DNA of 64,000 bases. Source: Epithemia pelagica. Lineage: Eukaryota; Protista; Bacillariophyta. The position numbers were made by a program, and so were the translations under genes. The stretch covers positions 372,001 through 436,000 of the forward strand of contig OX337240.1 of NCBI GenBank assembly GCA_946965045.2, in the 5' to 3' direction. This document shows, one piece after another, positions 1,246 through 63,815 of this stretch. How positions within the stretch are numbered: position 1 is the stretch's first letter; each line of letters opens with the position of its first letter. Under the pieces are notes generated by a model. It worked only from the letters and a program-made list of their open reading frames with translations. It searched no databases and was not told the origin of the DNA.

Positions 1246-1421
1246 CCGGGTTGAATCACAAAGACCATTCTGAACTGATTGGATTCTAGATTTTATAGGA
1301 GTGAGATATCCACAGCAAGAGAAAGCACAAAACTGGTGGTATCCTTTCGCAAAAGGCCAACACCCAAACGCCCGCATGGCAGAGAAAAAGAGAGAGACAG
1401 AGAGAGAGAGACACGGAGGGT

Positions 1422-15058: not shown

Positions 15059-15358
15059 GAGTACGGGCAAGGGACTGGCGATCCCACAGTGATTGGGCAA
15101 GACTCAAGTATCAAGACTATAAGGACAGGCTCAGTGCGTGGATCCCTAACAGGTGAAGCTGCCAGTCACGTGACATTATTGTCTGTGATATACTGACAAC
15201 CTGGATTACTACGGTGTGAGGGGCCCGCGTTTCGTAATTAGTCGGGTACTACGGCAACGCGGCTGTTGGAAAAGAGGCTTCCTCAATAGTTGTTTCTGAC
15301 AACAAAGGAATTCCCGCCACAGCTTTCGTGCTTACAGCGACTTACACTGAGTAACATA

Positions 15359-15677
<319 letters not shown>

Positions 15678-15723
15678 CAGCGACATGCATTTTGTTTATT
15701 AAATTTTTAGCTTCATTTTAGTC

Positions 15724-29852: not shown

Positions 29853-30094
29853 GGCCAATCGGAGGGCACGGCCCATGGTCCCAACACCAACATGCCCATG
29901 GAACTGATCCAATCCAACAGACTTATCGCCAACATTAAGCGGTGATAAACAAACTGTAGCAATTCCTTGCGATCGAACCAAATCGACCACAAAACCAGAG
30001 ACGAGCCCGCCACCGACCATGGTGCCGTGAAATAGGGTAGGATTGCCAAAACGTTGGCTTGCGTGTCGGTATACAGGGGAGCGGGGTCTGTCAT
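28433..30094 (-). CDS. 7TM GPCR-like gene B, intact (exons 30094-29712, 29603-29033, 28900-28433; ~473 aa)
   Basis: Starts MTDPAPLYTDTQANVLAILPYFTAPWS. Canonical splice sites; spliced length 1422 nt. Confidence 0.87.
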
Positions 30095-37369: not shown

Positions 37370-37635
37370 GGTGCGTTATTACTGTCGGTCGGAGCAAACG
37401 AACGAGACTCGCCAGCAGCAAACAGTAGTAGAGACGTCCAATTGGTGTCAATCGACTCTTTCTCTCCTCTTTTCAGACTCTTGTATTGATTCCTCTCTTG
37501 TTTTGTGAGATCCTCTTTCTTGCATTGGAAAGATACGGCATGCAACGAACCAACTACGTATCGGCATGACAATAATGAGCGACTCGTAAACATGATTGAA
37601 ATGCGACCAACGGATCCGTCTATCACCCGCGTAGT

Positions 37636-38558
37636 AAATCTACTTTAATAGCTGAGGGTGGACGAGGAGGAGCTAGGGTGTGAGGAGTGGCTCAACTCCG
37701 AGAAGGGCAATAGCGACGAGGAGTGGACTGCCCCTGTGAGATCCGCCTAAGCGGATCGAGGGGGCAGTCCACGACGAGAAGCTATTGCCCGACGAGGAGT
37801 TAAGCCACGAGGAGCGCCCTGCGACGAGGAGTCCCCCGGGGCTATTAAAGTATGTTAGCTTCCTTTGTCAGAAGGAGTCGTGCCAGCGCACGCTAGGTAA
37901 TTTTCAGTCTTCCTAAGTGATCGGCTCTCTCCTTCGATACTTAGGAGTCGAGAGCCAAATTATTTTTACACAATTTGGCTGGCCCAACTTTTGATAGGGC
38001 ACTAGGTAATCTTTGATTTTTTGTAAATAGCCATGTCACTTGAGTGGTCACATCCGAGTACATCGGATGAATAATAACGGTTTATGCCTAAGTAACATTT
38101 GTATTACATTTATGGAAGGCCAATCAAACTCCGAGGCGTGCCTCGTGTATAAATAAGACAACAGAATACTTACGAGTAGAGTCAATGAATGTCCCCGATT
38201 ACCCCCACGCCTCTTCTCTCCTTTCCCGTTCCCGACCCGAACCGACCACGACCACTGAATAAACGACACAAACACAAAAACAATGGGAAAGCTGACCAAG
38301 GTGAGTCCTCCTTCTCCGGGAGGATGGAGGATGTATCCATAATCCATCCACCAACAAAAGCTCTCCCAACTCCCAACTCACAATGATGGTGGATTGTTGC
38401 GAATTTCGAACCTCTGTCCATTGTCCATTCCTGGCCGTCTTTTGGTTCGTTTTTCGTTTCGGTGTTTGGGTGGTGCTACTTTTTGTTTCTTTTCCCGGGC
38501 TATTTTGCATGATTACACTAGAATAAAAAATCTACGTACAGTAATTTTAGGGGCTTAG
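37636..38558 (+). mobile_element. Non-autonomous relative of the Crypton-like element (right end 38558 or ~38616)
   Basis: Preceded by GTAGT (37631-37635) and starts with a rod homologous to 52188-52391. The 3' block tacactagaataaaaaatctacgtacagta matches tacactaaaataaaaaaccgagtacagta of the full element. GTAGT recurs at 38559-38563. Confidence 0.7.
37641..37852 (+). other. Rod-shaped hairpin A with periodic GA-rich internal loops
   Basis: Nested stems 37641-52/37841-52, 37687-99/37796-808, 37705-14/37781-90, 37723-34/37761-72, 37740-46/37751-57. Confidence 0.92.
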
Positions 38559-39151
38559 GTAGTGTGAGTGTGGGGAGTGACTTACTCCTCAGTGAGTCCT
38601 CAGTGATTGGGGAAGGGTAGGACGACGAGTGGTAAAGGTACCTTTTCACCGACCATGACACAAAAGATCCGCTCTCATCATATCTCTATTCTACCTAGAT
38701 AAACAGCAGCAGCACATCTTCAAAAAATGGCTCGAACGAATCAGCAGGCCATCCTCTGTAGGAAACCAATACTTCAATAGCCTGTGTGTATGGTAACGAT
38801 TTCTTTGCGAGACGGGCAAGAGTGGATCAACCATGCAAAACAACAACTACACAACGAATGCGATCGAATAAGGGATCGAACGGCAAGTTGGAAGTACGAA
38901 GCACAAAGGCAACCCTCGACAGGCCAGTCAAAGAAACCATTCCACTCCTCGTCAACACGAGTCTTTTCGCAGGAACAACCTTCCAAACATGAGTGTGTGT
39001 CTGTCTCTGGCCTTCGCCCCACACACCACACGAGCGCAACTGAAGTTCGTGGATGAAGGAATCAACGTACGCTATCCATATTCGTGTCACTCGCGCTCTT
39101 GGATTTTCAAGAAAACACCACATTGGGAATTGGCTTTAACTTATCAGAACC

Positions 39152-44400: not shown

Positions 44401-47400
44401 CGGATTGGCCAGAGGAATCAGACATAGCCCTTCAAGACGAATCGGAACGATCCAGAGGCCTCATTATGCTGGAGCCCTTTAAGAAGGCGTTTCCCGATCT
44501 TCGAGCAGAAATTGAAAAGGCCGTGTTTAGTCCACAGCAGCATGTAGAGTGTGAATACGTCGATTCCGTGTCCAGCTGGTCTACGACGACGGTGGATATC
44601 CAGATACAAACGAAACTCAATGCAGCAAAGACGACATTGGGCATAGCCAAGCTCCATCCGCTGCAAGAACGAGTCTGTGCGCACATAATAAAAAATCAGC
44701 TGGAAGACGTTGTTGTCAACGCTCCTTGTGGCTCTGGCAAGGTACGTTCGTTGTGATCTTACACCGTTTTGCCTTGTCTTGGTATCTCACTGTTCACTGG
44801 CTTGTTATAGAGCATGTGTTTTATGGTTCCCGCTGTCTTATTTGGAGGTATCACACTTGTTGTCGAGCCACTTAGAGCCTTGATTGACAGCTTATTCCGC
44901 GAATTACGGAAACGCAACATTAACTGTGAAAAACTCCTTAGCAACGAAGCAGCAGGACATAGTCAAGCTCTGAGCGCGTATAACCGTTTATGTACTTTAT
45001 TGGATGAAAGATTGGACGGCAAACCACTCGTCATTCTTACCACACCAGAACTTGTTTGCACGGGCGGTACAATGGAAATCCTGGGTAATCTACAAGAACA
45101 GGGAAAATTGCGAAGAGTTGTTGTGGATGAGTTCGATTTATGGTACGTGAATTTAATTGATTTAAGTTCGGCTTGTGTCACAACTTCTCCGTACACAAGG
45201 ATTACTCATATGGTTGTTTACTGGAACTTGTGGAATACCTCAGTATCGAACCAAAGGAGAAGGAAGGGACTTGTCACCGACCAGCTTTTGCCGAAATTGT
45301 TCCTCATATTCGCAGAGTGCTGACAAGGACACCAGTGTGAGTATCAAAAGTTGAATGTACTTGCGAGTATGAAAGAAGCCCTCAATTTGATCTCCTTATC
45401 CAATGCACTCGCTCTGTTGGATCTCTTGTCCCCAGAATGTTTCTATCTGCCACGGCCTCCAACAGTGCCGTGAAACTCGTGTCATGGAGCCCCTCAGGGC
45501 AAAAGAAGCCAAAGTTGTTTCTTCACAGCAATCCGCTTCCGCATAATCATTTCTATCGTGTAGAGTCAAGGTCTATGACATGGACCGATGTTGCTGCAAG
45601 AATTGCCAAGATTCTGTCTGATTATGCCCGGGAACATCCAGAAGGTCCTCAGGCAAAGGCTCTTTGTTTCTTCGTTGGTCGAGCAATCGTGGGAACCTTT
45701 AGTGATTTATTGAACGAAAAGAAAATCACCTCTCTTGCTTATGTTGGGGCAGAGACAGAGAAACAAAAGCAACGAAACAACACAATCCTTCGGGAGTTTA
45801 AGGAGACTGATGTACAGGTTTTGTGTGCAAATTTAGCTCTGGGCCGAGGAGTAGATGATCTCCCAAAGAATATCCGATTTTGTTTTCATGTCCAAATGCC
45901 AGAATCTCTTCGTAAGTGCGTGCATAAGCGCCGTTTCCTCTCCGGTATAATTGAGGTTCTCATGTTCTGGCAGCTGAATATTTGCAACAGACAGGCAGAG
46001 CAGGCCGTGACGGTGGAGCGACTTTCTGCTACATGTTCTACCGTTCCGCTGACCGAAGTCGCATTGAGAATATTCTGGGTGGTAGGAGAAAAGAATTAAG
46101 TCACTATCAGCGCAGAGCTCTGGACCTAGTCAGGGAATATGCAATAAATGGGACAATGTGCCGTAAAGAAGCCCTGGCAAAATGCGCATTCGTTGGTGAG
46201 CCAACGCATGTTCGTTGTACGCATCCAGGGAAAATTCGGTGCGATAACTGTCTTGCCAGTGATTGTGTTTTTTCAAAGCCGAAAGACACTGGATGGCTCT
46301 TGGATGTAACAACCAGTATTCACAGTTTTCTTCTGAGAGCCAAATCGAAGTTTATGGTGAAAAATGACTTGAGGGAACAAGACCTACGGAAAGAATCCAG
46401 TGCGTGGCATTGCATCGCGCGAAATATTGAAGAGTTGTCTCCCGATCTTCAGGATAAGAAGTTCCTTCAATCGCTAGTTTCCGGGGGCCTAGATTTTAGC
46501 CTTCTCCATGACTTGGTCCGGTATATGAATGATGTATGTGTTCGGAGTGCCACAAACAAGACTCGCTCCGGACTAATTGATCATATTCGATCGAAGAGGA
46601 GTATCAAACGTTTTCTGTTTCAAGCATCACTTCCGCTAGAAAGCTTCAGTCAAGACAGGGTTCCGATATGTGTCTCACCGATTAAAGAAAACCGCGAAGA
46701 CGTACTCGAAATCGTTGGAAAGAGACAAATTTCAATATTGCTTCAGTACTTTCTCCAGAAAGGGATCGAAACATGGAACCGCAATACTAATAGCACGATC
46801 TTTGATCGTTCACTCGATCGGGAATATAGCATTGGCGAAACCTGCGAGGATGGCAATGATGCTGACGCCAATGCATTCAAAGCAGCTCTGCACTTCGTCT
46901 CAAAGGATCCACGCCTCAAGTCTCTGGACCTTACGAAACTCTATGATGCCCACAAACACGGTTGCGGTTTGTACTGGTCCGCCTCTGTCGAAAAGGATGG
47001 ATCTCTCAACATCTGTCATCCGGAGATAGCATGGGATCGTCGTATGTATCGTAAGTTTGGAGCCGACCGGTTCTTGACGGTACGCGTCAATAAGCAAGTG
47101 AATATCCAACAAATAAAGGAGCTTTTTGATGGCGATGGCATATCCAAGGGACACAAGGCACTTCTCTTTGGCCGGACATATCGTTATCTGTGGTGTAAAA
47201 AAGAAAAAGATCCACAGCAGTTTGTTCTGTTTGCGGAAGAGGGCCCAGGCTTATCCCCAACCTCAGTGTCTGACGTCCTGAATTGGGCAATACCTCATGA
47301 TTTAAATGGTTCGCTATCCATTGCGAAGCGATTAAAGAGGATGAAACTTTGGTTTTCTACGACCATACCGACCGCATGTTTACCGGCTGGAAGTGTACGG

Positions 47401-47415
47401 ATTGTTCCTGACTAC
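41487..47415 (+). CDS. RecQ helicase-RdRP fusion gene, 5' part (exons 41487-43305, 43386-43977, 44066-44741, 44811-45142, 45244-45336, 45436-45911, 45974-47415)
   Basis: RecQ motifs APCGSGK|SMCFMVPA, VVEPLRAL, TTPE, VVDEFD, LSATA, LALGRGVD, QQTGRAGRDG, and Zn-binding CRK...CDNC. These lead into an RdRP N-terminal region (RKFGADRFL, KRMKLWFSTT). All junctions are GT-AG and in phase. Confidence 0.85.
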
Positions 47416-48204
47416 CATTGGTCCTCGGGAGGGATGTAGGATCCCTGCACGTGCCTATTTACTATAGCCCATTTTGTACTGTACTCGGTTTTTTATTTTA
47501 GTGTACGTATGTATTTTAGCGGTCGTGGGAAATTCCGAGCGTAAAACCAGGGTCACAAAATGGATCGAAACGCAACCAATACAACAACGAGAGAAACCGT
47601 AGTGCATGAACCAATGAACCAAGGAACAAACGACCATGACAATCAAACAAGCGAGGCAACAAGCACAACAGCGAGCAAAAGCAACCAACAATCAACCAAA
47701 AAGGACAACCAAGGCAATACAATCAACAAACATCAAAGAAGCAGCATGGTAGAACAGCAGCGAGCGAAAAACATAAAGCATCAAGAGAGACAAGCAAAGC
47801 ATCAAACAACGAAACCAAAAGCGATACAACAATCAACCAAGACAAATGACAAAGCAACAATCAAACAAAGGCAAAAACCCACGCAATAAGCCAACAAAGG
47901 CAAGAAACAACAATAGAAACAGAGACGACGAAAATGAAACAAACATCAATCCAACAAACACAGAAACATAACCAACAACCAAACAGAAAGAACAACAGAG
48001 CAGACCGAGAGAAAAGAGAAGCAAGACAAAGGTTAGAGATGCATTGATAATGGAAATGGATGCAACAATCAAAAAGAGCAAAGACAACACTTACGTATTG
48101 AAGCGATCTACACGCAGAGCTCAAGCAACAATCTGCAATGAAAAGGAAGCAGTGAGAACATAGAAAAGACAAGACAACAATCAAACACAGAAAACTTACC
48201 TAGT

Positions 48205-51200
48205 TCAGTAGTATCGTCCACCATGGTGGTTGTGATTGTAGTGATCACCACCATGGTGGCGACTGTGGTGACGAGGATAGTAGGACTCGGAGCGGTGGTG
48301 GTGGTATGAGGAACTGTATTTGGGAGGAGGGGGCGAAGGGTGGAAGTGCTCCACTCGTTGACGGTACACTGCCTCCCCAATCAGACGAGAAGATGGAGGA
48401 GGTGGTGGCGGAGGCGTGTACGAGCGTGGAGGTGGAGGTGGAGGGGTCTGTCCACGAGGAGGATAGTAGTTGTTGCGTGTGGGAGGAGGAGGTGGACTCC
48501 AGTTCACCATTGCCCCATTTCCATTGTTATAGGAAGGCGGAGGAGGGGGAGAACGACGTTGTGATTGGGCGTAGTGGTTGTTGCGTTGGTCGTAATGGCC
48601 CTGATGGCTGCTTTCCAATGATCCGTGGTGGTGGTTGCTGTGATTGTGTTGGTCTTGATGGCCGAGGTGGCCACTCTCCCACGATCCATGGTTGTTGTTG
48701 TTGTGGTGGCGGGGGCGTTCGTCGTAGTACGACGAATGGCTGTTGTTGTTGTTGTGGTGGTGGTAGTGGCTATCGTCGTATGGTGGTCGACGATGGTTGT
48801 TGTTGTTGCTGTTGTTTTGACACTCGTAGTGGGGAGGTCGGCCACTGTTATTGTTGTTGTCGTTGTAGTTTTGGAACTCGTAGGGCGGTCGGCCGTTGTT
48901 GTTGTTGTTGTTCTCGTAGGGAGGTCGGCCATTGTTGCGAGTGTTGTTGTTGTTGCTCTCGTAGGGTGGTGCTCCATTCTTGTTGCTCTCGTAGGGTGGT
49001 CTGCCAGTGTTGTTGCTCTCGTATGGTGGTCGGCCATTGTTGTTGTTGTTGTTGTTGTTGGAGTTGTGAGAGTTGTTGTTGTTTTGGTTGCCACCATCCC
49101 CGTCGCCCCAATCAAAGCCTAGCGGAGAGAACGATGGAGACGAATCGTTGGCACCACCACCAGCAGTAGGAGCATCGGACGAATGATTCGGCGCTACGAT
49201 CAGAAAAGAATGACAGAAAGGTGAGAGACTGATTTCGAATGAACAACAATCAGACAACAAACTTACGCGACGACTTCTTCGGCTGTTCCACTTTGTCTTC
49301 TGGGGGGATGTACCAGTTTGCCGTCGAAGCCTTTAACTTCGACGCGGTAGAGACTTCTTGGTACTCATAATTAATCTCGGCCGATTTATGACGGCCAAAA
49401 TTCGTTGCCAAGACTTGTGGCACTCCGCAATTCGCCACTTTAGAGATGCCCGTTCTACGAGCAGTTCGACCGGTGAAGTTTCCATCTTCGGGGAACTTGC
49501 ATCGAGCAGCCAGCACCTTTGTGTTGTTCGCCGCGAAGTTGCTGCCGAGTTTGCCACCAGGACGCATACCCGTGGCCGGGTCGAACTTTTCTTGGGCACG
49601 GTCCTTCACCAGGTCAGTCCAACCCAAGTGTTTGGACCCACATTTTCGGGCCGCGATGATTTTCTTTGGGGCTTCGTACAAAAACAAGAGTCCCTTCCAG
49701 CCCGGCGGATGCGCTACCTTTCGGTAGTGCATAAATAGCTTATACGTACTCCACGGGTCTGCTTCGTTTTCTATGATCATGTTGGACAGCGAGTCATTCT
49801 CGCGGCGAAACGTAGGCTTGGCTAGCGTCAATTTTACGTTCTTGTGGTGGCCAGCATCAAGTGGGATGATTGCTGGCTTGCCCGCATGTTCTCCGTACGA
49901 CTCATCTAAACGAGCTACGAATCGAAAGTCAGTAATCCTTGCTAAATGAATCTGAATAGAAGTAGCAAGAACATCAGTAGAGGTGAGAAAACCAGTAAGA
50001 AAGCCCAACAATCAACCGTTTGGGTACGTACCTCTAAACAGCGAAAGCTAATATCGCGACAGAGCGAGTAGAAGAATAGCATTAGCAAGTCTTTGAAGAC
50101 TTGGAACGGATTCAAGGGAGGATCTGCGAGGTTGCGGATGTGATACTGATCATCCATACACACGCTGGCCCGTTTCGGCAAGCGACCGAACTCGGGACGT
50201 GCTTTCGCCGTCTTTTTCCAAATCCATTCTAAATACGCTTGGTACGAACCTCTGCCCTTGAGGTCCGTTTGCCCGATGCACACGCCGTTGGCACGCAGGC
50301 AAGCAAACAGATGATTCAATACCTTCCCAGTCGTGTTGGGTTGGTAATGAAACTTTGGATCGTGGGGATCATCGCGCCCCTTGACATACCCCGCCATCCG
50401 AAGATTCATGCAGAAGATAGCTAGCAAGGAGTTAAGTAGCCCCAACTTTCTTGGCGTCTTCGCCCCGCGTAGAGCAACGAACAACTTGGGGACTTTCAGT
50501 CCATCTGATCGTTCAGGGTCGACCATTAGCTTCGCGAGTCCTCGGTAGTGTCGGTGTCGACGAAGCACATCTAAGAAACGCTGGACCGACTCTTGTTTTT
50601 CCTTCGAGTACGACTCGGAGCAGCCAGCAAGCTCGCGAACATCATAGCCATGATACTCGTCCGCAAATACTTCATCGCTGAGTTCAGCGAACTGACCGAA
50701 GTATTCCAACAGGTTGTCGTCATGTGGTTCATCAAGTGGCAGAGTCTTGTATTCGGCGATTGAGATCTCGCCTTGCTCGTTCTCTTCGAGATGGCGTTGC
50801 TCCACCATTGCACGAGCAATGGTCTTCGTATCTAGTGGAGACGGAGGAGGAGGAGGGGCACGCCGAGCAAGAACACCACGTGCACGGGCATTTCGGCGGC
50901 TTCGAACGGAAACAGAAGGAACAAAATCTTCGTCCGCTTCAAGATCATCCATTTCCATTCCTTCAAAGATACTGTCATCATCGTCCGAACCGTCATCAAG
51001 GAACGGATTCGTTTGATTGTTCCTGTGGAAAGCAAAGGAAGAATGTAAGAGGGTGGAAGATGCAACAATCAAATAGAGCGACAACGCAACAACGAACTCA
51101 ACAACGAACGCAACAACAACGAAACTTACTTTGAACGGTGGCGTCGACGGTGAAGAAGAGGAGGAAGATCATCGGGAGGCGGTGGGTTGTTCTCCTTGTC

Positions 51201-51395
51201 GGCTTCCGACGGAGGAGGTGGACGAGGAGGTGGATTCTTCTTCTTCGGTTTTTGCTTCTTGTTCTTGTTGGTCATTCGGCGAGCGACCTTTCGGACGGGG
51301 GAGGACGAAGTTGCAGTTGGTGATTTGCTGCTGGCTGCAGCCAGTTGCCGTTTGGAGCGGCGAGTTGGCTGTTGCGAGGGAGGACTGTTGGCCAT
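48205..51395 (-). CDS. Tyrosine recombinase, Crypton/DUF3504-like (exons 51395-51130, 51022-50032, 49951-49267, 49193-48205; ~976 aa)
   Basis: YQPNT; box I DISFRCLE|IHLARITDF; box II FTGRTARRTGIS; GRHKSAEINYEY (H...Y). Three phase-compatible GT-AG introns and a N/P/H/Y-rich C-terminal tail. Confidence 0.82.
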
Positions 51396-52187
51396 GGTCA
51401 AGAACTTCCTGTCGTTGTTGTCGAAATGGCAAAAGTATGAGAAATGACAGGAAATGGAAGGATTTGAGTGACCATTGGAGGGCAGGCGCGCAGGAAGAGG
51501 ACGAAATTGGAAGAAAGGAAGACTTTCCACCATGGGAATGACGAAAAAGGACGAAACAACAATCAACTTACATTCTGTCGCACCGCTCAAGGAACCAAGG
51601 ATCGGAATGCAAGCTATGGAGATCAACATCTCCTTTGCATTCGTCGATCCTTGGTTCCCAGGTCCCATGGTACCTGTCGACCGTTGGGTCGACCGGTACG
51701 AAGACCATGGACGAGGGGTCTTCCCAAGGATCATAATTTGTCGACAACGTCGACATCGAAGACGAAGAAGACGACGACGACGATGCAAGAGAGATGGGAG
51801 ACGCTGCGGTGCCACGATGGGATGCGGAGCGGGGCATGGGGCTGACAATGGGACGGCTCGTCATGGTGGCAACCCAACAATCAAATGGATGAGGAAACCA
51901 CGACGACGATAACAACGACAACAGCGCCTACAACGATGCCTCCCACAATTTCAAACAGGTCCCTATGTAGCACCTAAGTATTTAGTTCGTCCCTAAATAG
52001 TGAGACCCTATGTGATCTTGTGTTCCTAAATAGTGAGAACCTAAGTGTCGTAAGTAATTTCCCCCAATATGTGACTACTTAGACTAAGTAGAGTGACGAG
52101 TTAAAAAAATCAACGGACGATAAGCCTAACAAAATATAAATCCTATGTGACACTTACATCCCCCCTCGGACGCAACGGAAGCGTACA

Positions 52188-52391
52188 ACATCTGCTCCTC
52201 GTCGTGATTCTCGTCGGGGGCACTTCTCGGGGGCCTAACTCCTCGGCGGGCAATAGGTCCTCGTCGTGTACTGCCCCAAATCCGCTTATAGCGGATTTGT
52301 TGGGCAGTACACTCCTCGGACCTATTGCCCTTCTCGGAGTTAGGCACCCCTCGTCGTGCCCACTCCTCGGATCACTCCTCGGAGCAGATGT
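52188..52391 (-). other. Rod-shaped hairpin B at the 5' end of the YR element
   Basis: Seven nested stems (e.g. 52188-98/52381-91, 52248-60/52318-30, 52266-76/52302-12, 52277-86/52290-99). Five 5x5 loops separate them and read GAGGA/GACGA-type on the minus strand. Confidence 0.93.
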
Positions 52392-52399
52392 AGAACTAC

Positions 52400-54642
52400 T
52401 ACAACCTTTGTGACAACTTTTCGGAAATTGATGGTTGTGGCTTGATATCCCAAGATGCATTGCATGTAGTATGGGATTGTTACCGCGCGAAGACTTCTGA
52501 GAAACGGTCTGATTCATGCATATGTCCGCACACAGGGTTTCAAGGCCGTCTTGGGGGTTTCAAAGGCACCTGGGTTCTGGACCGTGCTTTGGGAACTGGT
52601 ATCGTGGTTCATTGCAGAACAAGTCAGCACAAGTTTCAAGTTCCACAATCCTGTCTGCAGTCGACATCAAACAGAGCTGACTCGATGGAAGGAAAGGTTA
52701 CAGAAGACGACCACAGTGTATTTGAAGTGTCGTCTTGGGACAAGGATCCAACGCCAGCCAAATTGAACGTTCGGTTGATCCAACTGCTAGAACACTATGG
52801 TGCTTCTTGGGAATTCTTCGAGGAGAACTGTTTGGAACCAGCAATAAAGGATTTAGAAGAAATGATGGGATCTGGTCCAGAATCGAAAAGAGCGTGGTTG
52901 AAACATTTGAAAGAGAGACAACGTTCGAATGTACTGAAATCATGGACCGACAGCAGAAAATGCCTGAAACTGTTGTGCGCAAATGTGGCTACGTCCGACC
53001 CGGAGCTCTGTCGATTCAAGAAAAAGCTCGTGTCTGAAATGTTCCGCTCCCTTCAAAGCAAAGCACATTACCCTCTATCTGGCTGTGTTTATCTTCGAAT
53101 GTATGGTGATCACACATTGCTGCTGGAAGAAGGCGAGGCGTTTGTGGCATGCAATGGCGTTCGGACCGGGCTTGACGCTTTATCCGAAGAGATACTTGCC
53201 ATGAGGTCGCCGTCGTATTTTGGGGGAGACATGAGACGACTGTCTTTGGTGTCATTGGATGAGTTGAAGAAGCGATCAAGAGATCCCGAACATGCAAAAC
53301 GTTTTCCTTCTGGATTGCGTAGTGAGCTGGTGCGATCCGGTCAAGAAGCAGTAGAGTTTTTTGCTTGTGAGTAAAAGAAGGTAACGAAGGATTAACGGCG
53401 TGTCCTTTCATGTTCAGTCGTGTCGCTAATTGGTCTTTCTTTCAGGTCTTAAAAACTGCATTGTGTTGTGTAATAAGGGAAAACGGAGCGAGGCAGATCG
53501 AATGTCTGGTGGCGACTACGATGGAGACCTTGCATGGGTATGTTGGAACCAGAAACTCATGGAATCCTTGACACAAACCAAGATTGCTGCCGAGGACATT
53601 TGTGATATAGTGGATAACCCCCTAGAACTGGGGAAACGATCTGCATGGGACCCGGACAATCAGGTGCATGAACTTGATTATGCTCGAAAGTTTAAAATGC
53701 ATCATGTCACACTGGGCAAGCTGTCCAATGCGTTGGACGCTGCGATTGACCAATTTGGCTTTGGATCTCCTCAGGCACAAACGTTAGGTCGCGCACTATT
53801 TCTACAAGTGGATGTTCCAGACACGCGTAAGTCAAGCTTGGCTTGGTTTCTAGTCGAAGTTTCGAGTCGTTGCTTATCCATCTGGTTTTCGTTTTTTGCT
53901 CACAGCACTATTGCGACAAGAAGAAGAAGCGACCCTGCTTGAATCGATCAAGACTCCTCATTGGGCGCTCAAGGACAGGTTCTCGTCTCACCGAAGCTAC
54001 AAATCCAACAAAATGCTGGGCACTTTGTTTGATGCGTTGAAGAACCGCATGGAATTGGCCATGTCTGGATCAGAAAGTGTCGACGGAGAAATGAAGTTGG
54101 ATCCCCTCATTTCAAAACTTGTGGACCCGTATCGGGGCAACCAGGAGTGGCGGCAACTCGAGATGCGAATGAGAACGGCCGTGGAACTCTATATTACAGA
54201 AAAGGCAAAATATTGGGAAAACCGTTCTGTTGGCAGTCACGACAGGATCGTTGCGGATGCGTCCTTTGGCAACAACAAGAACGACCAAGAGAAGGAACAA
54301 GCCGCCGAAGAAGGACGCCGCCACTATGAGACATGGAAGCTCGAGTACTTTACCCGGGCACGCACAGAGTTGGGAAGAGGCGAGGAATCTCGCAATCAAA
54401 CGCAGCTTTGGGAAGTCAAGCCCCAGGTATGGGGGGCCACACTGTACATGGTGGGTTGGGAATGTCATCAGGAATGGACACACAAGCGTCAAGAGACGAG
54501 TCATGGCGTCCAACACAAACATGCCGGTGGTCCCATGGAATTCGTTTGGGGCGTTGCCGAAGGAGAACTATTAAAGGACGTGTTCTACACCAAGAGTTTG
54601 ATTGTTGCCGAGGAAGTGGAAGCTCTTGTCCTTGGTATTTAA
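52400..54642 (+). CDS. RecQ-RdRP fusion gene, 3' part: eukaryotic RNA-dependent RNA polymerase catalytic domain (exons 52400-53366, 53446-53826, 53906-54642)
   Basis: DGCGLIS, FQGRLGGFKGTW, RTSQHKF, RSPSYFGGD, NCIV and catalytic SGGDYDGD. Confidence 0.92.
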
Positions 54643-54949
54643 AAGAGACTCCATGCCAATTGTGGATTGTGAATGATAACAGAAAGATTCGAAAAGGTAG
54701 TTTATTTGTTGACATGACTTCATTTGTGTATAAGATACGTCCATCCACAAGCTCATCTCCTTGGTGGCCGCTACATACTTTTTGTTGTGGCGAGAACCGG
54801 GCAACAGGATGTACATGTGTGTGTGTGTGTGATCCTATTCGCGTTCCAACGTCCAAAGCGCCACACGTTTCGGCCATGTACATACACACCGCCTCTCTCT
54901 TTCTCTCTCTAGTCTGGCCACACCGACACGAATCACACAAGACTGTAGA

Positions 54950-55412
54950 AAGTCGAAGAAGGAATCGATCGAGACGGCATCTCCACAAAGTGTCTGTCTG
55001 GTTTATTCTTGTATGGAGCCACACAAAAGTACCGCTCTAATCGTTCCCTCTAAACTAGCGCGAATTGAAACGTCCAGTGCAGTACTTTTTGCCAAAGTCC
55101 CACTCGTTCTCTTGAATCCGGTGGATCCATTCTTTCACGTCCACCACATGACTGTTTCTTCTTCTGGATACCTACGCACAACAACCAATGCCGTTGGTGT
55201 TGGAACGCTTTCATGGTAAACAGACACCTATATCCCATATCAAAACTCCTTGACTCGATTACCCTCATCCTCATTACCATTTTGGAAGGATGGTGGAGTT
55301 GCGGGAAGAAGGGATCCGGCACCTCTGACACAGCAGCCATAGCCCCCACAACCGAACTAGATCCAAAAGAAGGACCTGCACCTACTCTACGGTGTAGGAA
55401 GTGTTGGAACAA
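54950..55412 (+). pseudogene. Decayed copy 1 of unknown gene X
   Basis: KESIETAS...AVLFAKVPLVLLNPVDPFF is homologous to 58250-58740 and 62070-62520; contains stops and frameshifts. Confidence 0.6.
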
Positions 55413-55870
55413 TAACTTTGACGTCTATCTAGGCAAATTAGTTTGGAATTGGTGGAGTAACGGTCACTAGCTATAGTGCTTAGTATCGACTCCTAAGTGC
55501 TCCTCCTTTTCCACTGACGACCACAGGGAGAGCATACTACATCTGACATGGTAACGAAGAAACTACTCTAATAGAATGATCCTTTTGTGAACTTGTATGT
55601 GTCATATCTTCGCGTTCCAAAATTGTGTTGTGTGCGGATGGGAGCAAACTCATACCATGCAACAATCGCCGCGCTCGATTTCAGCCTATGTGCTGGCTTT
55701 CCATAAGTAATTGTCCAGAAAGTTCGGCCCTCGCGTCGGCCAAACCCCCGCTGATCGCTGATCGACTCGTCCATCTCACATTTTTTTCAGCACCATCTCG
55801 ATCCTCGCTCGATCGTCATCTATTGGATGCTGTTGACGGTTGATATGCCTCTAAAGAGAGACGAAGCAAA

Positions 55871-57268
55871 ATGAGTGTCCCTCCCCAAGAAAAGAAAGCC
55901 ACTTGGGTTTTGGAAGCAAAGAGTGACAGCCATGGTAGAAACAATTGGAGTCATTTTCCCTTGCGGTTGCGAAAGGGCATTCTGGTCTGTTGCGTGTTAA
56001 TGCTTGGGGTGGCCAACCTTGTTCCTCTCTGGTCCGACGACGAGCTGAATCAGTTTGCTCGCTACCTACAACCACAAGTCACACAAGACCATGTCATGTC
56101 TCTGCTTACCAAGGAAGCTTCTACTGTTACACCGATTTGTCAGACCGCACCGTGGCCAGTCGTCCTTCCGTCTCGAATTTATTATTGTGGTCACGACCGA
56201 CACGCCCTTCTCCAACTCGTCTATCCGGAATTTGCCTCCATTCCCCGCACAAGATTGACGCGACAATCGATTCGCAATGCCACGCAACACGATGTTCTCG
56301 TGTTTGGATCCTGTGGACTCTGCCCAGGATTTCCGAAACACCCACGTCTACTGGAAGTCCTGCAGAAGGACTTTCCTGGAATGGTCTTTCATATCAATGG
56401 CGAAGCCAAACAGGGTGATATCTGGGAACAATTGGCAACCTTCCAATCGTCACTTCCACATCCACAACAACAATCACCACAACGCCCAACAAATGAGTCC
56501 AACAGTTCCGTGCCAGTGGTGCCAGCTCCCCCACGACGCAATTTTCATATTGGCTACGCGGCCGACTCCAATTACAGTGTCCGAGTTCTTTTTGCGAGTC
56601 AGACTGTAGCTGAAGCCTCCCACGAGATACAACGATGGTTGTTTGATCCGTTGCAAAAGCCACGCAACACGGGACAGGCCTTTTTACTGTACACGGCGAG
56701 CAATTGTGTGCCCTTTCGCGAACAGGCCTTCCAGGACATTGCCACGGCCGTTTCCAAGATTAGTAATGTGGTACACAGCAATCGATCGACCGTCCTTCAC
56801 AAGTGGGCCATGTGTGGGGGCAAACTGGCGCCCCCCGTCTCGCCGTGGAAACCCAAAGACTGGCATGGGAATTGGCCAAGCAATTACGAATCTTATCGTC
56901 ATTATCGGTTTTGTCTTGTGTTGGAAAACAAATACCAACCAGGATATATCACGGAAAAGATTGTTCTGGCCTTTTGGGCCGGATGCATTCCCATTTATTA
57001 CGGTACACAAGAGGTATTTGATATTTTCAATCCTCGAGCCTTTGTCTATTACGACCCGGGTCGTCCCCAACAAGCCCTGGCCCAAATTGTGCACTTGGAA
57101 ACCAACCAAACAGCCTATGATGAAGTGATGAAGGAACCCATTTTGGCGCATGGTAATGACACTATCGATCGTTATTTTTCACTCTAGGATGGCATTGGTC
57201 GTGGTTCCTTCTTGAAGAAAAAGAATCGTGACATGGTCTGTGCGCAAGTACACGATTTGGAGCAGTAA
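55871..57268 (+). CDS. GT10 alpha-1,3/4-fucosyltransferase-like, copy 1; CAG>TAG at 57185-57187 removes the last 26 aa
   Basis: N-terminal TM anchor and motif YRFCLVLENKYQPGYITEKIVLAFWAGCIPIYYG. Downstream codons still match copy 2 up to TAA at 57266-68. Confidence 0.88.
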
Positions 57269-58239
57269 ATTGATAGAAAGAATAATCAAGCGGACGAAAC
57301 ACCCCATTGGAACCGGATGGTTCTACTCACTTTTGCTTCACAGAGCCACAAATCGAAATGGTATGAACAACACCACTAGGCAACGGATTGATCCAAAAGG
57401 AAAGAGTGGTCAGTCTTGGCATGCTTTCACTTTGGCACTTTCGTCATTTCGCAGAATAAGAAGCGGAAATGTCACCCAAGGCCACGAGTTGTCGTTCGTT
57501 TGGACCGACCAACGTTCAACTGCGCCTATCTTTCCCAAAACAGTTTGGCTGTCTCTTATTGCTTTGTCCTACCTAGGTTTTTGTGTCGTTAGGCCTCCAT
57601 AATACCGTAGGATGGGATCCTTTCGACCAGAATCCAGCCTACGACTCAAGCGCTGCGCATTCCAAAGAAGAATGCTTGGTGGGAGGCTCACGGGTATCCA
57701 AGGATATAGCCTTGATCGATCTAGCTGTAGGTGGACACTCGAGCCAGTTGTGTGTAGATTTCTATTTGGGTTGTTGTGGAGGCAGATCCCGGTCCACCAC
57801 AACATACAGAAATGGGAACGACCGCTTCTCTCTCACGAGAGGTACAATCCCTACTCTTTACTCTGTCGTGTGTTCTCTTGTCGAGAGAGACAGACAGAGA
57901 GTCCAAAAAGGACAGTCACCACCCACTCTTCGACGAAAGGTGCCCCTACCTTGGACTTGGAGTAGGAGTACCTCTCACGGTAGTTACTCCTAGGCTTACT
58001 TCTTTTGCCCAGGAATCTTCCGCTGTGTAAGACCCGCGTGAGGCTCGAACGAGAGCGAGGCGGTGTGAAGAACCAAAAGGGGAAGGGGTGCGTCGTCAAG
58101 CGACGGCCGCCCAAAGTTCCTGTCTTCTCCTTTGGGTCAAACGAAGGAGCACGACACAGAAGATATAGGAGGATGAGAGCATCCACATCTTTCGCGGAAC
58201 CCTGTCCCATAGTTGTCTCGAATTACACAATGACTGTAG

Positions 58240-59008
58240 AGAGTCAAAGAAGGAGTCCGTCGAGACGGCATCTCCACAAAGTATCTGTCTGGTTTATTCT
58301 TGTGTGAAGCCCACACAAAAGGGCCGTTCTAATGATCCCTCTATAATAGCGCGAATTGAAACGACCAGTGTATAGTACTTCACGCCAAAGTCTTACTCGT
58401 CCTCTTGAATCCGTTCGATCCATTCTTTCACCTCCAACCAACGACCGTGAGTGTTGGTTCTTCCTCCAGAGGCAGTTGGATCCCTACGCACAACAACCGA
58501 AGTCGTTGGTGTTGGAACGCTTTCATGGTAAACAGACACCCATATCCCATATCAACACTCCTTGACTCGATCATGCTCATTTTCGTGTCGGAAGGATGGT
58601 GGAATTGGGCCTGGAAGTCGTGGAACAAGGGATCTGACCCTGACACAGCCACAACCAAACCGGATCCAAAGAAGGTCCTGCACCAGCCGCAACGAATGGA
58701 TGCGGCTACTTTGTGGTCTTTTTCGTCTCGGCCTTGACAATGACAACGACGACAAACTCCGCAAGAACCCACCCACGGACTCTCCCACCACGACCACAAT
58801 GGTAGAGCAAGACGAGCAAGGATGGTCCCCAAACCAACCAGGAGACCGACAAGATCCCGAAGGACAGTGTACTCTTCCACAAGCGGACGACAACAACACG
58901 GCGAATCGGAATCATTCGGCGAATAATCCCACACAAGGAGTGGCCACATGCCCGATCAAAGCGGCTCATACTGTGCGGCATGGGAAGAGCATACTGCATG
59001 TAGTCTAG
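58240..59008 (+). pseudogene. Decayed copy 2 of unknown gene X
   Basis: LNPFDPFF...LDSIMLIFVSEGWWNWAWKSWNKGS aligns with LEPLDPFF...LDSIIRIIMSEAWWHRAWKWWTKGS; contains stops and frameshifts. Confidence 0.6.
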
Positions 59009-59410
59009 AATCATCCTTTTGAGCGCATCTCGAGCCAACCAACGGAGAACTTGTGTGTCGTGTCTTTGCGTTCCAAAACTGTTGTGTGAGGAATGAGGGA
59101 AACTCAAACCATGGAACGATCTGCATCTTGATCCGTATCCCGCTACCAACGTGCGCTGGCTTTCCATAAGTAAATGTACAGAGGACAATCAGAACGATCG
59201 ACCGTTCACCGTTATCATCTCCCGCGCCGGTCGCACCGCTGCTAACGATCCCTTCGTTCCCACTAATTTCCACGCGCTGCTAACGACTAACGATCCCTTC
59301 GTTCCATTAATTTCCACAAGAAGTATTGAGTCTCGTGATCGTCATCTTGAATTCACTTGACAGTACCTAGTTGATACACCTATAATATAGGGAGACGGAG
59401 ACTAAACAGA

Positions 59411-60868
59411 ATGAGTGTCCCTCCGCAAGAGAAGAACGCCACTGGACTTTCCAAAATACGAGTAAAGGGTGACAGCCATGGTAGAAACACAAGGAATCAT
59501 TTTCTGTTGCGGTTACCAAAGGGGATTCTGGTCTGGTTCGTCTTGATGTTTTCGGTGGCCAACCTTGTTCTTCTTTGGTCCAACGACGAGCTGAATTCTA
59601 GTGTATGGATATATCGTGCCAGTTACTTGTCGACTCTCCCACTACCAATACCAATGGAACTCGTTGTGAAGAATGGCACGACGGACTTTGGGGACAAACA
59701 AGAAGAAGTCGAACGAGACCAGGAAGTCTCTATTACACCCATTTGTCAAGCCACACCGTGGCCAGTCGTCCTTCCGTCTAAAATTTATTTTTGTGGTAAT
59801 GACCGACAAGACCTTCTCGAACTCGTGTACCCGGAATTTGCGTCCATCCCCCGAACTTGGTTGACGCAACAATCGATTCGTAATGCCACCCAAGACGATG
59901 TACTCGTCTTTGGATCCTGTGGACACTGCCCAGGATTTCCCAGACAACCACGTCTACTGGAAGTCCTGCAGAAGAGCTTTCCTGGAATGGTCTTTCATAT
60001 CAATGGCGAAGCCAAACAGGGTGATATCTGGGATCAATTTGCCTCCTACCAGTGGTCACTTCGACATCCACAACAACAACAATCACCAACGAATGAGTCG
60101 AACGGTTCCGTGCCTGTGGTGCCAGCTCCCCCGCGACGCAATTTTCATGTGGGCTACGCGGCCGACTCCAATTATAGTGTCCGAGTCTTTTTTGCCAGTC
60201 AGGTTGTGGCCGAAGCCTCCCACGAGATGCAACAATGGTTGTTCGATCCCTTGCAAAAGCCACGCAACACGGGAGAGGCCTTTATGCTCTACACGGCGAG
60301 CAATTGTGTCCGCTTTCGCGAACAGGCTTTCCGTGAAATTGCCTTGGCCGTTTCCAAGATACCGCTAGAAGCCCACAACAATCGATCGACCGTCCTTCAC
60401 AAGGGGGCCAAGTGTGGGGGCAAACTGGCGCCCCCCGTCTCGCCGTGGAAACCCAAAGACTGGCATGGGAACTGGCCAAGCAATTACGAATCTTATCGTC
60501 ATTATCGGTTTTGTCTCGTGTTGGAAAACAAATACCAACCAGGATATATCACGGAAAAGATTGTTCTGGCCTTTTGGGCGGGATGCATTCCCATTTACTA
60601 CGGTACACAAGAGGTATTTGATATATTCAATCCTCGAGCCTTTGTCTATTACGACCCGGGTCGTCCCCAACAAGCCCTGGCCCAAATTGTGCACTTGGAA
60701 ACCAACCAAACAGCCTATGAGGAAGTGATGAAGGAACCCATTTTGGCGCATGGTAATGACACTATCGATCGTTATTTTTCACTCCAGGATGGCATTGGTC
60801 GTGGTTCCTTGTTGAAGCAAAAGATTCGTGACATGGTGTGTGCACAAGTACAAGATTTGGAGCAGTAA
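59411..60868 (+). CDS. GT10 alpha-1,3/4-fucosyltransferase-like, copy 2, intact (485 aa)
   Basis: Type II membrane anchor and GT10 motif ENKYQPGYITEKIVLAFWAGCIPIYYG. Confidence 0.9.
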   Translation: MSVPPQEKNATGLSKIRVKGDSHGRNTRNHFLLRLPKGILVWFVLMFSVANLVLLWSNDELNSSVWIYRASYLSTLPLPIPMELVVKNGTTDFGDKQEEVERDQEVSITPICQATPWPVVLPSKIYFCGNDRQDLLELVYPEFASIPRTWLTQQSIRNATQDDVLVFGSCGHCPGFPRQPRLLEVLQKSFPGMVFHINGEAKQGDIWDQFASYQWSLRHPQQQQSPTNESNGSVPVVPAPPRRNFHVGYAADSNYSVRVFFASQVVAEASHEMQQWLFDPLQKPRNTGEAFMLYTASNCVRFREQAFREIALAVSKIPLEAHNNRSTVLHKGAKCGGKLAPPVSPWKPKDWHGNWPSNYESYRHYRFCLVLENKYQPGYITEKIVLAFWAGCIPIYYGTQEVFDIFNPRAFVYYDPGRPQQALAQIVHLETNQTAYEEVMKEPILAHGNDTIDRYFSLQDGIGRGSLLKQKIRDMVCAQVQDLEQ

Positions 60869-61972
60869 CTGGAGAAAAAGATGGAGGGGACGGACGAAAC
60901 ACCATTGGAACATGAGTTTCCCACTGACTGTTGCTTCGACAGAACCACAAAAAGGAATGGTGACAGCAACGCCACTAGGCAACGGATTTATCCAAAAGAA
61001 AAAAGTGTTCTCCCTAGTTCGCATCGGGGTTTTGGTTGCGTAATGAATGGTTGGTTTCGACATTCCTCCACTTGCTTTCGTACGCCATGTCGGTTAACAG
61101 GAAGCATACATAATAGATGCCACCCAAGGCCAAGAGCCATTCCTCGCTGGGACCAACCAACGTTCCACGTCTCCTACTTTGTTCAAGACAGTTTTATTTT
61201 CCATGGCGTACTCCTGCCTCTAGATTTTTGGATCGTTTCTCGGGAGGATCAGAAGGGATCCTGTTGGAGCAGAATCCAGTACGATTTTATCGCTGCGCAT
61301 TCCAAAGAAGAATGTGTCGTGGAAGGAGGAGGTTCACGGGAATCCATGGCGTAGAGCCGTGAGCGATGGAGGATCGATCGACTCGAACGATTGTTGTATG
61401 TTGGGAGGCAACACCAGGTCCACCCAAACACGTAGGAGTATACCTAGATTTGCTCTACAGAGAGAGGGCATGAACCTTTTCGTCGTCCTATAGTTACTCC
61501 TATTCCTCTAGAGAGGACTACGCCTATAGTCCTAGGAGTACTTCTTTGGAGCCCCTACCTACATAGAACTCTTCCACACCGCATAGCTGTGAGACCCGCA
61601 TGAGATCGCGACGCCCGTCGGTCCATTCCGCTGGCTCGAACGAGAGCGAGGCGGTGTGAAGAATCAAAACGGGCGCGTCGTCCGCCCCAACGAGAAACCA
61701 AAAATGTCATTTTCATCGGAGGAGGCGCCTCCTGGCTTCCTGTGTTGCCAAAAGAAAGGAAGGAGACCAACAAACAACAAACACATGCAGCAGAAGAGAG
61801 AAGAAGGAGCAGAGAGCACAAACGACGCCATTCGAGGAACCATGTCCTTTAATTGTCTCGTAGAGGAGCCAGAGCCGAGGAGGCGCATTTCCCCTACGGA
61901 CACTAGGAACTAAGATGTACATGTGTGGTCCTATTCAAGTTCCAAATTCCTATCCGCTACACTTTTCTGTCA

Positions 61973-62018
<46 letters not shown>

Positions 62019-62030
62019 TGTGTGTTCACA

Positions 62031-63815
62031 GTCTTGTCACCGACAAGAATCCCAAAAGTCTCTAGGAAGGAATCGATCGAGACGGCATCTCAACACATTG
62101 TGTCGCTTGTTCTTGTATGGAAGCCACATGAAAGGGCCGGTTCGTGACTCCTCATCTTGGATCATAACACATACAGCACGATCCTTTCTCTCGCAAAACA
62201 CAAGTGTGTGGACCCTCCCTCTAGTAAGAAGCGCGCGACATCCAGAGCAGTACTTCACGCCAAAGTCTCACCTGCTCCTCTTGAACCGTTGGATCCATTC
62301 TTTTCATGTTGTGATCTTTGGCGGTTGCACCAGAGCAACAGCACAAGTCGTTGGAAGTCATTCCACTACGAGAGCCCCATACTATACGAGGTCCTTGACT
62401 CGATCATCCGTATCATCATGTCGGAAGCATGGTGGCATCGGGCCTGGAAGTGGTGGACCAAGGGATCCGGTGCCCCTGACACCACAACCGAACCGGATCC
62501 AAACCAGGACCTGCACCAGCCACCACCATCCGTGGCTGCTGCTTCGTTGTCGTCTTGTGCTTCTCAATCACACCCATCGAAACGACGACGACGAACTCCG
62601 CAAGAACCACCCACGGACGGTACCGAGCCGCCACACAACGAGCCAGGATGCTGGTCCCCGCACCAACCACCAGGACCCCAAGATCCGGAAGGACAGTGCA
62701 CTCACGACGACGACAACAACAACCAGGCGGATCGGAATCACGTCTGGTTTCAGAGCCTTGATCGAGAAGCTCCGACTATCCAAAAAGATTCGTATCATGA
62801 TTCGGCGAGGAATCATCATCCCACTCGAGGAGGAGTGGCCCGGTTGGTCTCTCCCTCCTCCCATCCAGAAGAGGACGAGGATGGTGCTGGGAGTACGAGA
62901 GTCGAGAAGCCTGCCGCATCATCCACCCATGGCAACAAGCAGAAGAAGAGGGAAAAGCAGATGGTGCAGCGCCGGAAACGCATCGCCACTGCCAAGCAGC
63001 AAACGGCCACCAAGAAGAGAAAGAGCAAGCGCCGCATCCTGGAAGATACCTCCTCCTCCTCCGAAGACGACGACGACGATGGTCCAAGAAGAACGAACCG
63101 GCCTCCTCGCAAAAAGCAGTGCCGTTCATCGTCCCACGAAAAAAGCATCAAAAAGAAGAAGGACCCAGAAACGCCGAAACCATCCAGTCCTCACAAGGCC
63201 ACCCGAACCAGAACTACCGCACAAAAATGCAAAGAAGACGACGATGATGACGACGACGAAGACATCACCTCAGCCACTCGTCGATCGAGCCTCCGGTTGC
63301 AACGCATGTTTGATGCACGGCGTCGTTACGCACGGCGACAGGGAACCCTTGCTCCTGCCAAACCCAAGACCGACTCCATTTCCCGCTCGGAACCACACGG
63401 CACGATCAGCGGCAGCCCACGAGCCACTCGGAACCATCGAACCAAGGAATCGAACCATGACGACGACAAGATGGCGTTGCCCCCGAACCTGTCCTTGCAA
63501 CAGCCGTTGCGCAAGAATACGAGTACGTGTCAACCTTGGAGCACTATAAGTTTGGCGTTTGCACAAATACGTTTTCTGACCCCTCGTTGTGTGATTGTTG
63601 ATTGTGTTGCGACCAGATGCGCAACGGCTCGGTCGTTGCTATTATCGGAGCTTGGTGTGGTCGGGGACCGAGTTTTCGGTGGGTTCCGTTGTCCTTTGGA
63701 AGACTTCCCCCCAGAAAGACCACAGGAGTCCGTGTTGGACCGTATTGATTACCGGCATTTTTCAAGCGACACTCTCGGTGCGGGGAGTTGCCTACCACCA
63801 CTCGGAGGACAATGA
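62031..63815 (+). CDS. Unknown gene X, longest copy (conserved N-terminal block plus basic/acidic disordered tail); in-frame TGA at 62145-47 suggests it may also be defective
   Basis: 552-codon ORF in the frame conserved among the three copies. An acceptor-like (ct)n..ttcacag lies at ~62030. Confidence 0.45.

Follow-up and report, generated by a model that had tools for sequence, protein, structure and literature searches.

The window analysed here is a stretch of 64,000 nucleotides from the diatom Epithemia pelagica, in which a gene for a fusion of a RecQ-like helicase and a eukaryotic RdRP (45982-47410 and 52403-54642, plus strand; Pfam Helicase_C, RecQ_Zn_bind and RdRP) is interrupted by a mobile element. 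This element, element A (47411-52402, minus strand), is an autonomous Crypton-like tyrosine recombinase (YR) DNA transposon of 4987 nt plus one 5-nt core repeat, and it splits the Pfam RdRP profile such that positions 10-152 are matched on one flank and positions 168-411 on the other. Near its left end lies a long imperfect hairpin, the rod (52188-52391, minus strand), which is the subject of most of what follows. Other parts of the window contain a segmental duplication, with copies at 1-6200 and 23955-30100 that lie ~24 kb apart and are 100% identical in sampled 300-nt stretches, together with diverged part-copies at 8160-8730 and 32600-33520. An open reading frame of 1886 aa at 15724-21384 (plus strand), with Helitron_like_N, DUF6570 and PIF1 helicase domains, apparently encodes an intact Helitron transposase, and a long 12- and 9-nt microsatellite is found ahead of it at 15305-15688. 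At 54900-57200, 58200-60900 and 62000-63800 lie paralogues in tandem that share a family-10 fucosyltransferase C-terminal domain and reach 85-97% identity over some of their length.

Comparison with four other insertions fixes the left end of element A at 52402/52403, and BLASTN alignments show both of its ends to be common to loci L001, L002 and L003; the loci for this comparison of ends were obtained via relatives of a neighbouring open reading frame. A further copy, L004, is 99.2% identical to element A by BLASTN and sits at another insertion site, and a search with a spurious open reading frame that runs through the rod returned two loci, L004 and L005. The extreme ends are 5-nt direct repeats of GTAGT and are not inverted repeats of each other. 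The left core (52398-52402, minus strand) is placed by the aligned left ends of 12 copies and by an empty-site joint, both sides of which its five letters fit, and the right core (47411-47415, minus strand) by the same joint and the aligned ends. Across copies the core has the general form GTNGT, and the 12 left ends read GTNGT, then A-N4-TAC, then the base of the rod; in element A the 6-nt linker AGTTCT (52392-52397, minus strand) joins core to rod base within a conserved GTA-N4-TAC box that straddles the boundary. The rod base at 52391 thus lies 6 nt from the 5-nt core, and not 3-5 nt from it as had been claimed from a reading of the sequence only.

The empty-site joint itself, which runs from 47410 to 52398 with five shared letters and a single GTAGT, is present in contigs from 4/4 public runs of the organism, so the insertion of element A is polymorphic; the mapped end and this joint together bear out the claim that the rod stands at the end of a tyrosine-recombinase element. 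A 6-kb contig of the uninterrupted RecQ-RdRP gene in an RNA-like run shows in turn that the allele without the insertion is expressed. Among the contigs of the four public runs, which drop rare forms, none spanning a circle junction was seen. With a polymorphic insertion, and with an intact spliced YR transcript of the element type in an RNA-like run, element A looks active. Relative to flanking sequence, the word depth in DNA runs is ~12-16x over the rod, ~9x over the right end and ~1.5x over the YR body. A separate observation concerns the 3' part of element A at 47394-48970, a stretch that includes the Asn/Pro-rich low-complexity tail of the YR open reading frame and that has 50-100x flank depth in run X4 and 2-9x in runs X1 and X2; the X4 excess may reflect a library effect or an abundant fragment of the region.

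The YR gene (48205-51854, minus strand) is defined by a spliced contig in the RNA-like run X3 and by the genomic frame from there to the stop at 48205. The contig gives exons at 51854-51571, 51407-51129, 51021-50032, 49951-49267 and 49193-48265 (minus strand), separated by GT..AG introns; it is still in frame where it ends at 48265, and its open reading frame, intact over 1050 codons, has not closed by then. Copies at different sites retain all four introns. The rod is absent from the assembled YR mRNA, as the spliced contig stops at 51854, and in X3 the interval 51866-52283 is free of contigs for every copy that is at least 80% alike. The spacer that separates the fold from the start of the assembled mRNA (51855-52154, minus strand; X3 depth 0 over 51866-52283) presumably contains the promoter of the YR gene. 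Pfam searches of all element open reading frames and of full-length relatives detected neither reverse transcriptase nor RNase H, and no LTR-like repeats were found in element A. The kept introns, with no reverse transcriptase found, indicate that the movement of element A is DNA-based.

The same Pfam searches gave no YR match in the element or in its full-length relatives, and no other domain in the element open reading frames, and the assignment of the protein draws on more distant comparisons. The nearest atlas clusters of the element A protein carry Phage_integrase, DUF3504 or NDC10_II. In an alignment of 30 relatives the R, R and Y residues are invariant and the K, RxxR and H near-invariant; the first His of HxxR is Arg in the YR relatives, and Arg I lies in exon 3. 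The catalytic spacing in this alignment, R-23-H-9-Y, matches that of XerD. The best PDB match of the YR profile is box II of XerA (E 0.036), and an AlphaFold (AF2) model of the relative P0082, with pLDDT 85-95 in its catalytic part, matches Cre, Xer, Flp, QRICH1, Ndc10 and IntI (probability 0.99-1.0; Foldseek E 3e-3 and weaker). By the atlas clusters, the alignment of relatives, the PDB profile and the model of the relative, the element A protein is predicted to have a tyrosine recombinase fold. One of the YR relatives comes from the diatom Entomoneis.

The rod is a hairpin of 204 nt, predicted to form 77 pairs and to be interrupted 14 times. Ten of the interruptions are 2x2 loops, and 8/10 of these are GA/GA. 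The minus-strand letters of 52391-52188 quoted in the sequence-only reading matched exactly when they were re-read. Under RNA parameters the centre base of each 5-nt rod 'loop' is paired, which leaves paired 2x2 GA/GA loops, and the repeat unit can be written as GA-S-GA opposite GA-S'-GA, with two 2x2 GA/GA loops flanking one G-C or C-G pair. Folded as single-stranded DNA, the strand with the GA loops has an energy of -72.9 kcal/mol against -27.9 +/- 3.1 for shuffles (z -14.5; 0/200 shuffles equal it), and the complement strand one of -69.6 kcal/mol (z -12.9). The GAGGA/GACGA motifs are spaced irregularly along the rod, at 12, 13, 20 and 18 nt. A coding reason for the presence of these motifs on the same strand was considered and rejected: the spacings are out of frame, near-identical copies differ by 1-nt indels (204 versus 205 nt), and the YR mRNA contig does not reach the rod. 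Searches of the window with Rfam 15 gave 0 matches at gathering score, and the best sub-threshold match at E<=1 was a miRNA precursor with 23 bits against a 74-bit cutoff.

Rods of this kind recur in related elements. A strong hairpin lies 2-3 kb upstream of the last catalytic exon in related YR loci, and a rod is found upstream of the YR gene, on the YR sense strand, in 12/12 further loci with enough upstream sequence (L001-L005 and L008-L013, all from one assembly, and L016, from a separate JGI metagenome); L014 and L015, on contigs of 3.4-3.5 kb, were left out as too short upstream of the YR exon. The rods fall into an A-type group (L004, L001 and L005), a group of L002 and L003, L008, a B-type group, L010, L011, L012/L013, and L016. 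In families with 35-47% YR identity to element A the stems are unalignable with those of A and the GA/GA loops are the same; in distant families these loops are sometimes lengthened to GACGAGGA opposite GACGAGGA, giving three tandem G.A blocks. Over nine rods, 58/73 of the 2x2 internal loops are GA/GA and the loop letters number A215, G189, T31 and C22, or 88% purines, so the loop sequences are non-random, in keeping with what had been proposed. A single bulged T on the 5' arm occurs 10 times in the nine rods.

Alignment of the eight alignable rods gives 94.7% of cells paired, with changes on both sides in 22/65 rod pairs as compared to 12.4 +/- 2.1 in shuffles (0/500 as high) and 2-6 in slid controls, a comparison among related sequences, mostly of one genome, in which the shuffle count cannot be read as a probability. 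Stronger arguments for selection on the fold come from the slid controls and from the turnover of stems between families, and together they indicate that the rod is under selection as a structure, its architecture being kept where the stems are unrelated. The compensatory changes that had been pointed out between element A and the copy at 37641 are present, columns 86/131 having T-A in one and G-C in the other, and columns 74/143 G-C and C-G. Comparison of element A with its sister subfamily L001/L005 gives identities of 98% for the rod, 94% for the post-rod stretch and 96-100% for the right ~110 nt, against 71-80% for the YR exons and 71-90% for the introns. Nearly all of the rod copies come from one organism and one (L016) from elsewhere, and the copies are related; in the loci examined the rod is always at the same end, beside the crossover core, which supports its linkage to the ends of YR elements. 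A pattern scan with 22 specified invariant bases yielded 2 chance matches in JGI metagenomes, both in bacterial-looking coding DNA and without a hairpin, and 0 matches in viral contigs.

Two observations on single loci are recorded here. In L013 a second left end (L013:11813-11973), 81% alike, lies 59 nt past the right end of the first element, the two elements being nearly tandem. In L001 (L001:5008-5380) an X3 contig of 388 nt, with a depth of 135 as against 50 for the YR mRNA, starts in the left flank, passes the core and the 5' arm and reaches the apex, and then continues for 20 more nt that match none of the loci compared; it could stem from read-through, from a half-rod truncated at some other place, or from the assembly having broken at the palindrome.

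The window holds a second member of the group in element B (37631-38640, plus strand), a ~1-kb non-autonomous relative with a core GTAGT at 37631-37635 and a rod at 37641-37852, where the sequence-only reading had placed a diverged rod homologue. Its right end is near 38640, not 38621, and matches the right end of its autonomous partner L009, with which it makes up the B-type rod group; it retains the whole rod and both ends and has no gene, and L009 has a YR region without stop codons. An example of rearrangement within the rod is presented by this pair, as L009:6877-6959 is the exact reverse complement of window positions 37715-37800 apart from one base, that is, a flip about the palindrome centre. 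The flipped part comprises two inner loop modules and the apex, and one GAGAA now stands opposite TTCTC, fully paired. Such flips and loop closures evidently occur, and the inner loops may be dispensable; the GA identity of inner loops, judged from this pair, may not be essential.

The rods are not equivalent on their two strands. GA/GA loops lie on the YR sense strand in all rods, this being the purine strand, and its fold is more stable than that of the complement, by 3-5 kcal/mol under DNA nearest-neighbour parameters and by 11-25 kcal/mol with RNA parameters. The rod fold is strand-asymmetric under both sets of parameters, in line with the strand specificity proposed for it at the outset.

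The fold also extends beyond the rod. A post-rod linker (52179-52187, minus strand) is followed by a segment X' (52155-52178, minus strand; CCGTTG-C-GTCC-GA-GGGGGGATGTA) that is complementary to the right terminus of the element, where the segment X (47416-47438, minus strand; TACATCCCTCC-CGA-GGAC-CAATG) pairs with it. The pairing extends into the first core G at 47415, so that TACATCCCTCC-CGA-GGAC-CAATGG (47438-47415) is matched with 52178-52155, and a G.A loop recurs between its stems; X and the right core (47411-47438) are 96-100% identical in L001 and L005. The hairpin described at 52188-52391 therefore stands, but the fold is not complete at 52188, continuing as it does into 52155-52187 and pairing with the other end of the element. 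X/X' and the rod taken together make the rod 3' arm plus X' an internal segment complementary to both extremities.

In the window the right end and the post-rod stretch pair with -20.1 kcal/mol (duplexfold), as compared to -9.5 +/- 2.8 for random 50-mers, 2/1000 of which are as low. Across copies, the last 50 nt against 60 nt of post-rod sequence gives -18 to -44 kcal/mol in 8/9 copies and random 50-mers ~-9 +/- 3, the 50-mers being drawn from the same locus, with 1-14/1000 as low and the self-complement among them. The one exception is element B, in which this pairing is weak (-9.6 kcal/mol). The complement spans the last 25-45 nt, with its partner site ~215-250 nt inside the left end, and it differs in sequence between families; in L010-L013 it is near-perfect over ~35-40 nt and stops exactly at the right terminus. 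It was not found in L016, a single copy, though the rod is present there. When the right end is joined to the left end as in an excised circle and the product folded in silico, the helix crosses the junction in the constructs of A, L002, L012, L009 and B. The joined ends give a predicted fold of ~280-300 nt with the core in a stem ~35-45 nt from the base, and the continuation of the fold across the joint would place the cut site inside it.

Crypton DNA transposons, which Goodwin et al. reportedly described in 2003, resemble element A in having a single intron-bearing YR gene, no reverse transcriptase, short direct repeats (here of 5 nt) and no terminal inverted repeats, and the host is stramenopile-like. 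The label 'Crypton' given to the element by the sequence-only reading thus fits in kind, by its YR fold, the lack of any reverse transcriptase found and the 5-nt direct repeats, but the ends, GTNGT or TAGTA, are not the TATGG typical of CryptonS of oomycetes and Phaeodactylum. A further difference is that element A carries a structured rod of 200 nt at one end and has its other end complementary to post-rod sequence. Cryptons have been described without terminal structure, with 4-6-bp direct repeats only, in an account in which the word 'hairpin' occurs 0 times (Kojima & Jurka 2011, PMC3212892), and a paper of 2026 likewise describes them as being without terminal structural features (PMC13465315). 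Full-text literature searches for Cryptons with hairpins or palindromes returned no description of such an end structure, in line with the sequence-only reading, which knew of none.

The DIRS-1-type internal complementary region (ICR), which is said to have been reported by Cappello et al. in 1985, is a likeness to the pairing of ends, being an internal segment that is complementary to both extremities side by side, so that the ends of the folded strand abut at a circle junction, and DIRS elements too encode a YR. In DIRS-1 the ICR can pair with each of the LTR extremities, to which it is complementary, and retrotransposition depends on it (PMC7192593). DIRS elements differ in having reverse transcriptase, RNase H, methyltransferase, inverted LTRs and a cDNA route (Malicki et al. 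2020, PMC7192593), whereas element A keeps its introns and has its internal complement adjoining the left end, where it forms a hairpin punctuated by GA/GA loops. With no reverse transcriptase or RNase H match and no LTR-like repeats, element A is not a DIRS member.

Precedents for recombination on folded DNA come from bacteria, where an integron integrase acts on the folded attC site and XerCD on the folded site of the CTX phage; no eukaryotic YR is known to act on folded single strands. The rod resembles attC and CTX attP(+) in being an imperfect palindrome at one end of the integrated unit, in carrying non-Watson-Crick features, which here are GA/GA loops on one strand only that may mark it, and in having the crossover within a folded stem between helical arms, although here this is so in silico and for joined ends only; in the bacterial systems one strand is the substrate. 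Those sites differ in being bacterial and 57-150 nt long, with extrahelical bases or an unpaired centre and not tandem G.A pairs, and in their recombinases, IntI or XerCD; single-strandedness is proven there, whereas the fold here is predicted from sequence. Bacterial YR elements can also circularise one strand only (PMC9345347), and the Vibrio SEs (strand-biased circularising integrative elements), in which one specific strand is circularised, offer a likeness in which one-strand action is, for element A, a conjecture. They differ in being bacterial and in having a pair of YR genes and inverted repeats that are short and imperfect, and a rod hairpin has not been reported for them (PMC9345347). 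Among the papers searched, none describes a Crypton-type element that combines a G.A-zippered rod at its terminus with an ICR-like segment complementary to both ends.

Our preferred reading, which we advance tentatively, takes the rod as a terminal structure that acts in cis in a family of Crypton-like YR DNA transposons and serves as a strand-specific folded-DNA recombination site or splint. The analysis shows a fold that is conserved, covaries and keeps to one place and strand; it also shows complementary ends, a mobile element and a YR fold for its protein. To this the reading adds that the nucleic acid would be single-stranded DNA, that the YR would bind it and that its G.A pairs would be sheared. 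The rod would then be the left-end part of a longer fold of the purine-rich (YR sense) strand, and its 3' arm with ~30 nt beyond would serve as an internal complement to both termini, pairing both with the 5' arm (the left ~105 nt) and with the final 25-45 nt of the right end. If the ends were joined in an excised circle, or brought together on a single unwound strand, a rod of ~280-300 nt would result in which the ends abut and the core GTNGT stands in a duplex-like stem between two helical arms. The recombinase would recognise and cut the folded purine strand, with strand exchange at the core, and the choice of strand would follow from tandem G.A mismatches that keep the purine strand stacked, the complement having destabilising T.C/C.T mismatches. 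Against this reading weigh the flipped inner loops of L009, the weak pairing of ends in element B, the right-end complement not found in L016, the small strand difference under DNA parameters, the origin of nearly all copies in one organism, the four runs in which no circle-junction contig was seen, and the fact that eukaryotic YRs are not known to work on folded single strands. Of the roles that had been put forward for the rod (an attC-like folded substrate, a YR-binding scaffold or an element-encoded structured RNA), the attC-like substrate gains from the joined-end fold with its core in a stem, while the RNA loses ground from the end of the mRNA at 51854 and from the lack of any X3 contig over 51866-52283.

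The structure could instead work as duplex DNA, which we think rather doubtful, and this might happen in either of two ways: the ~300-bp imperfect palindrome at the circle junction would extrude as a cruciform, a four-way junction like the YR Holliday intermediate, or the ten same-strand C-GA-S-GA-G motifs, with one more near the right end, would be an array of accessory or architectural sites bound by the recombinase or by some host protein. The use of accessory arm sites is common among YRs, and the CGAGGA/CGACGAG motif recurs in direct orientation on both arms and, in the A, L002 and B families, stands also 8-12 nt from the core at the right end; moreover, both rod strands fold well in silico. 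Binding sites, however, need no complementarity of stems, yet the stems covary, and a cruciform favours perfect pairing, yet every family keeps its mismatched loops; the irregular spacing of the motifs (12, 13, 20 and 18 nt) and a right end without the motif in the L012 family also tell against sites of this sort. That the rod is a structured RNA, transcribed from the element or by read-through as a regulatory or guide-like ncRNA or as a hairpin shaping small-RNA silencing, we judge unlikely. Structured RNAs often contain tandem G.A pairs, the YR sense strand is in every case the purine one and is favoured by 11-25 kcal/mol under RNA parameters, and the X3 contig of depth 135 does enter the 5' arm from the L001 flank and reach the apex. 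Against this, the YR mRNA contig ends short of the rod and the interval 51866-52283 is without contigs, as seen in the assembled contigs of one RNA-like run, and no Rfam match rises above threshold; the two-end pairing would need a joined DNA form or an unusual transcript, and the retention of the rod by non-autonomous copies fits a cis role in DNA movement.

A role in regulating or shielding the YR gene, as a promoter-proximal element, insulator or terminator against host read-through ~330 nt upstream of the mRNA start, appears improbable: it would account for the fixed position of the rod upstream of the gene and for the L001 read-through contig that ends at the apex, but the gene-less element B retains the rod, the copy number of the rod is ~10x that of the gene, and the complementarity to the far end would be left unexplained. 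Most improbable is a functionless foldback or MITE-like palindrome kept by arm-to-arm conversion. Long palindromes are common in repeats, and L009 shows that inversion and loop closure do occur; conversion, however, would close loops, yet GA/GA is kept in 58/73 of the 2x2 loops across unrelated stems, the rod is 98% identical where exons are 71-80%, and neither the end nor the strand on which it lies varies. Nor is the element built like a MITE, having a palindrome at one end only, a 5-nt core shared with the empty site and a YR as its partner gene. Two other candidates were rejected. Telomere-resolvase-like cutting at the palindrome centre is contradicted by the empty site and by all copies, which place the exchange at GTNGT by the rod base and not at the apex, and the rod loops are invariant GA motifs without complementarity to the target core, unlike the loops of a bridge RNA or guide.

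If the folded-DNA reading is carried further, these would be the first eukaryotic transposons with a YR acting on folded single-stranded DNA, a ~300-nt G.A-zippered rod splinting the ends and making the core a pseudo-duplex, such that one strand is excised or integrated as integron cassettes are, with the DIRS ICR as an RT-era descendant or a parallel invention; we offer this as a speculation that has a real but minor chance of being right. Cryptons are hard to annotate without an end signature and their mechanism has been inferred in the literature, and the rod provides a practical hallmark for finding such elements and their non-autonomous relatives. A rod built of repeated GA-S-GA/GA-S'-GA units is also an unusual natural nucleic-acid motif that is worth structural study. 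Together with the pairing of the ends it supplies a concrete model of how a eukaryotic YR transposon brings its ends together, and with the end complement it is a possible bridge from Cryptons to the DIRS ICR. Should the fold indeed act as single-stranded DNA, recombination of the attC/CTX type would be extended to eukaryotes.
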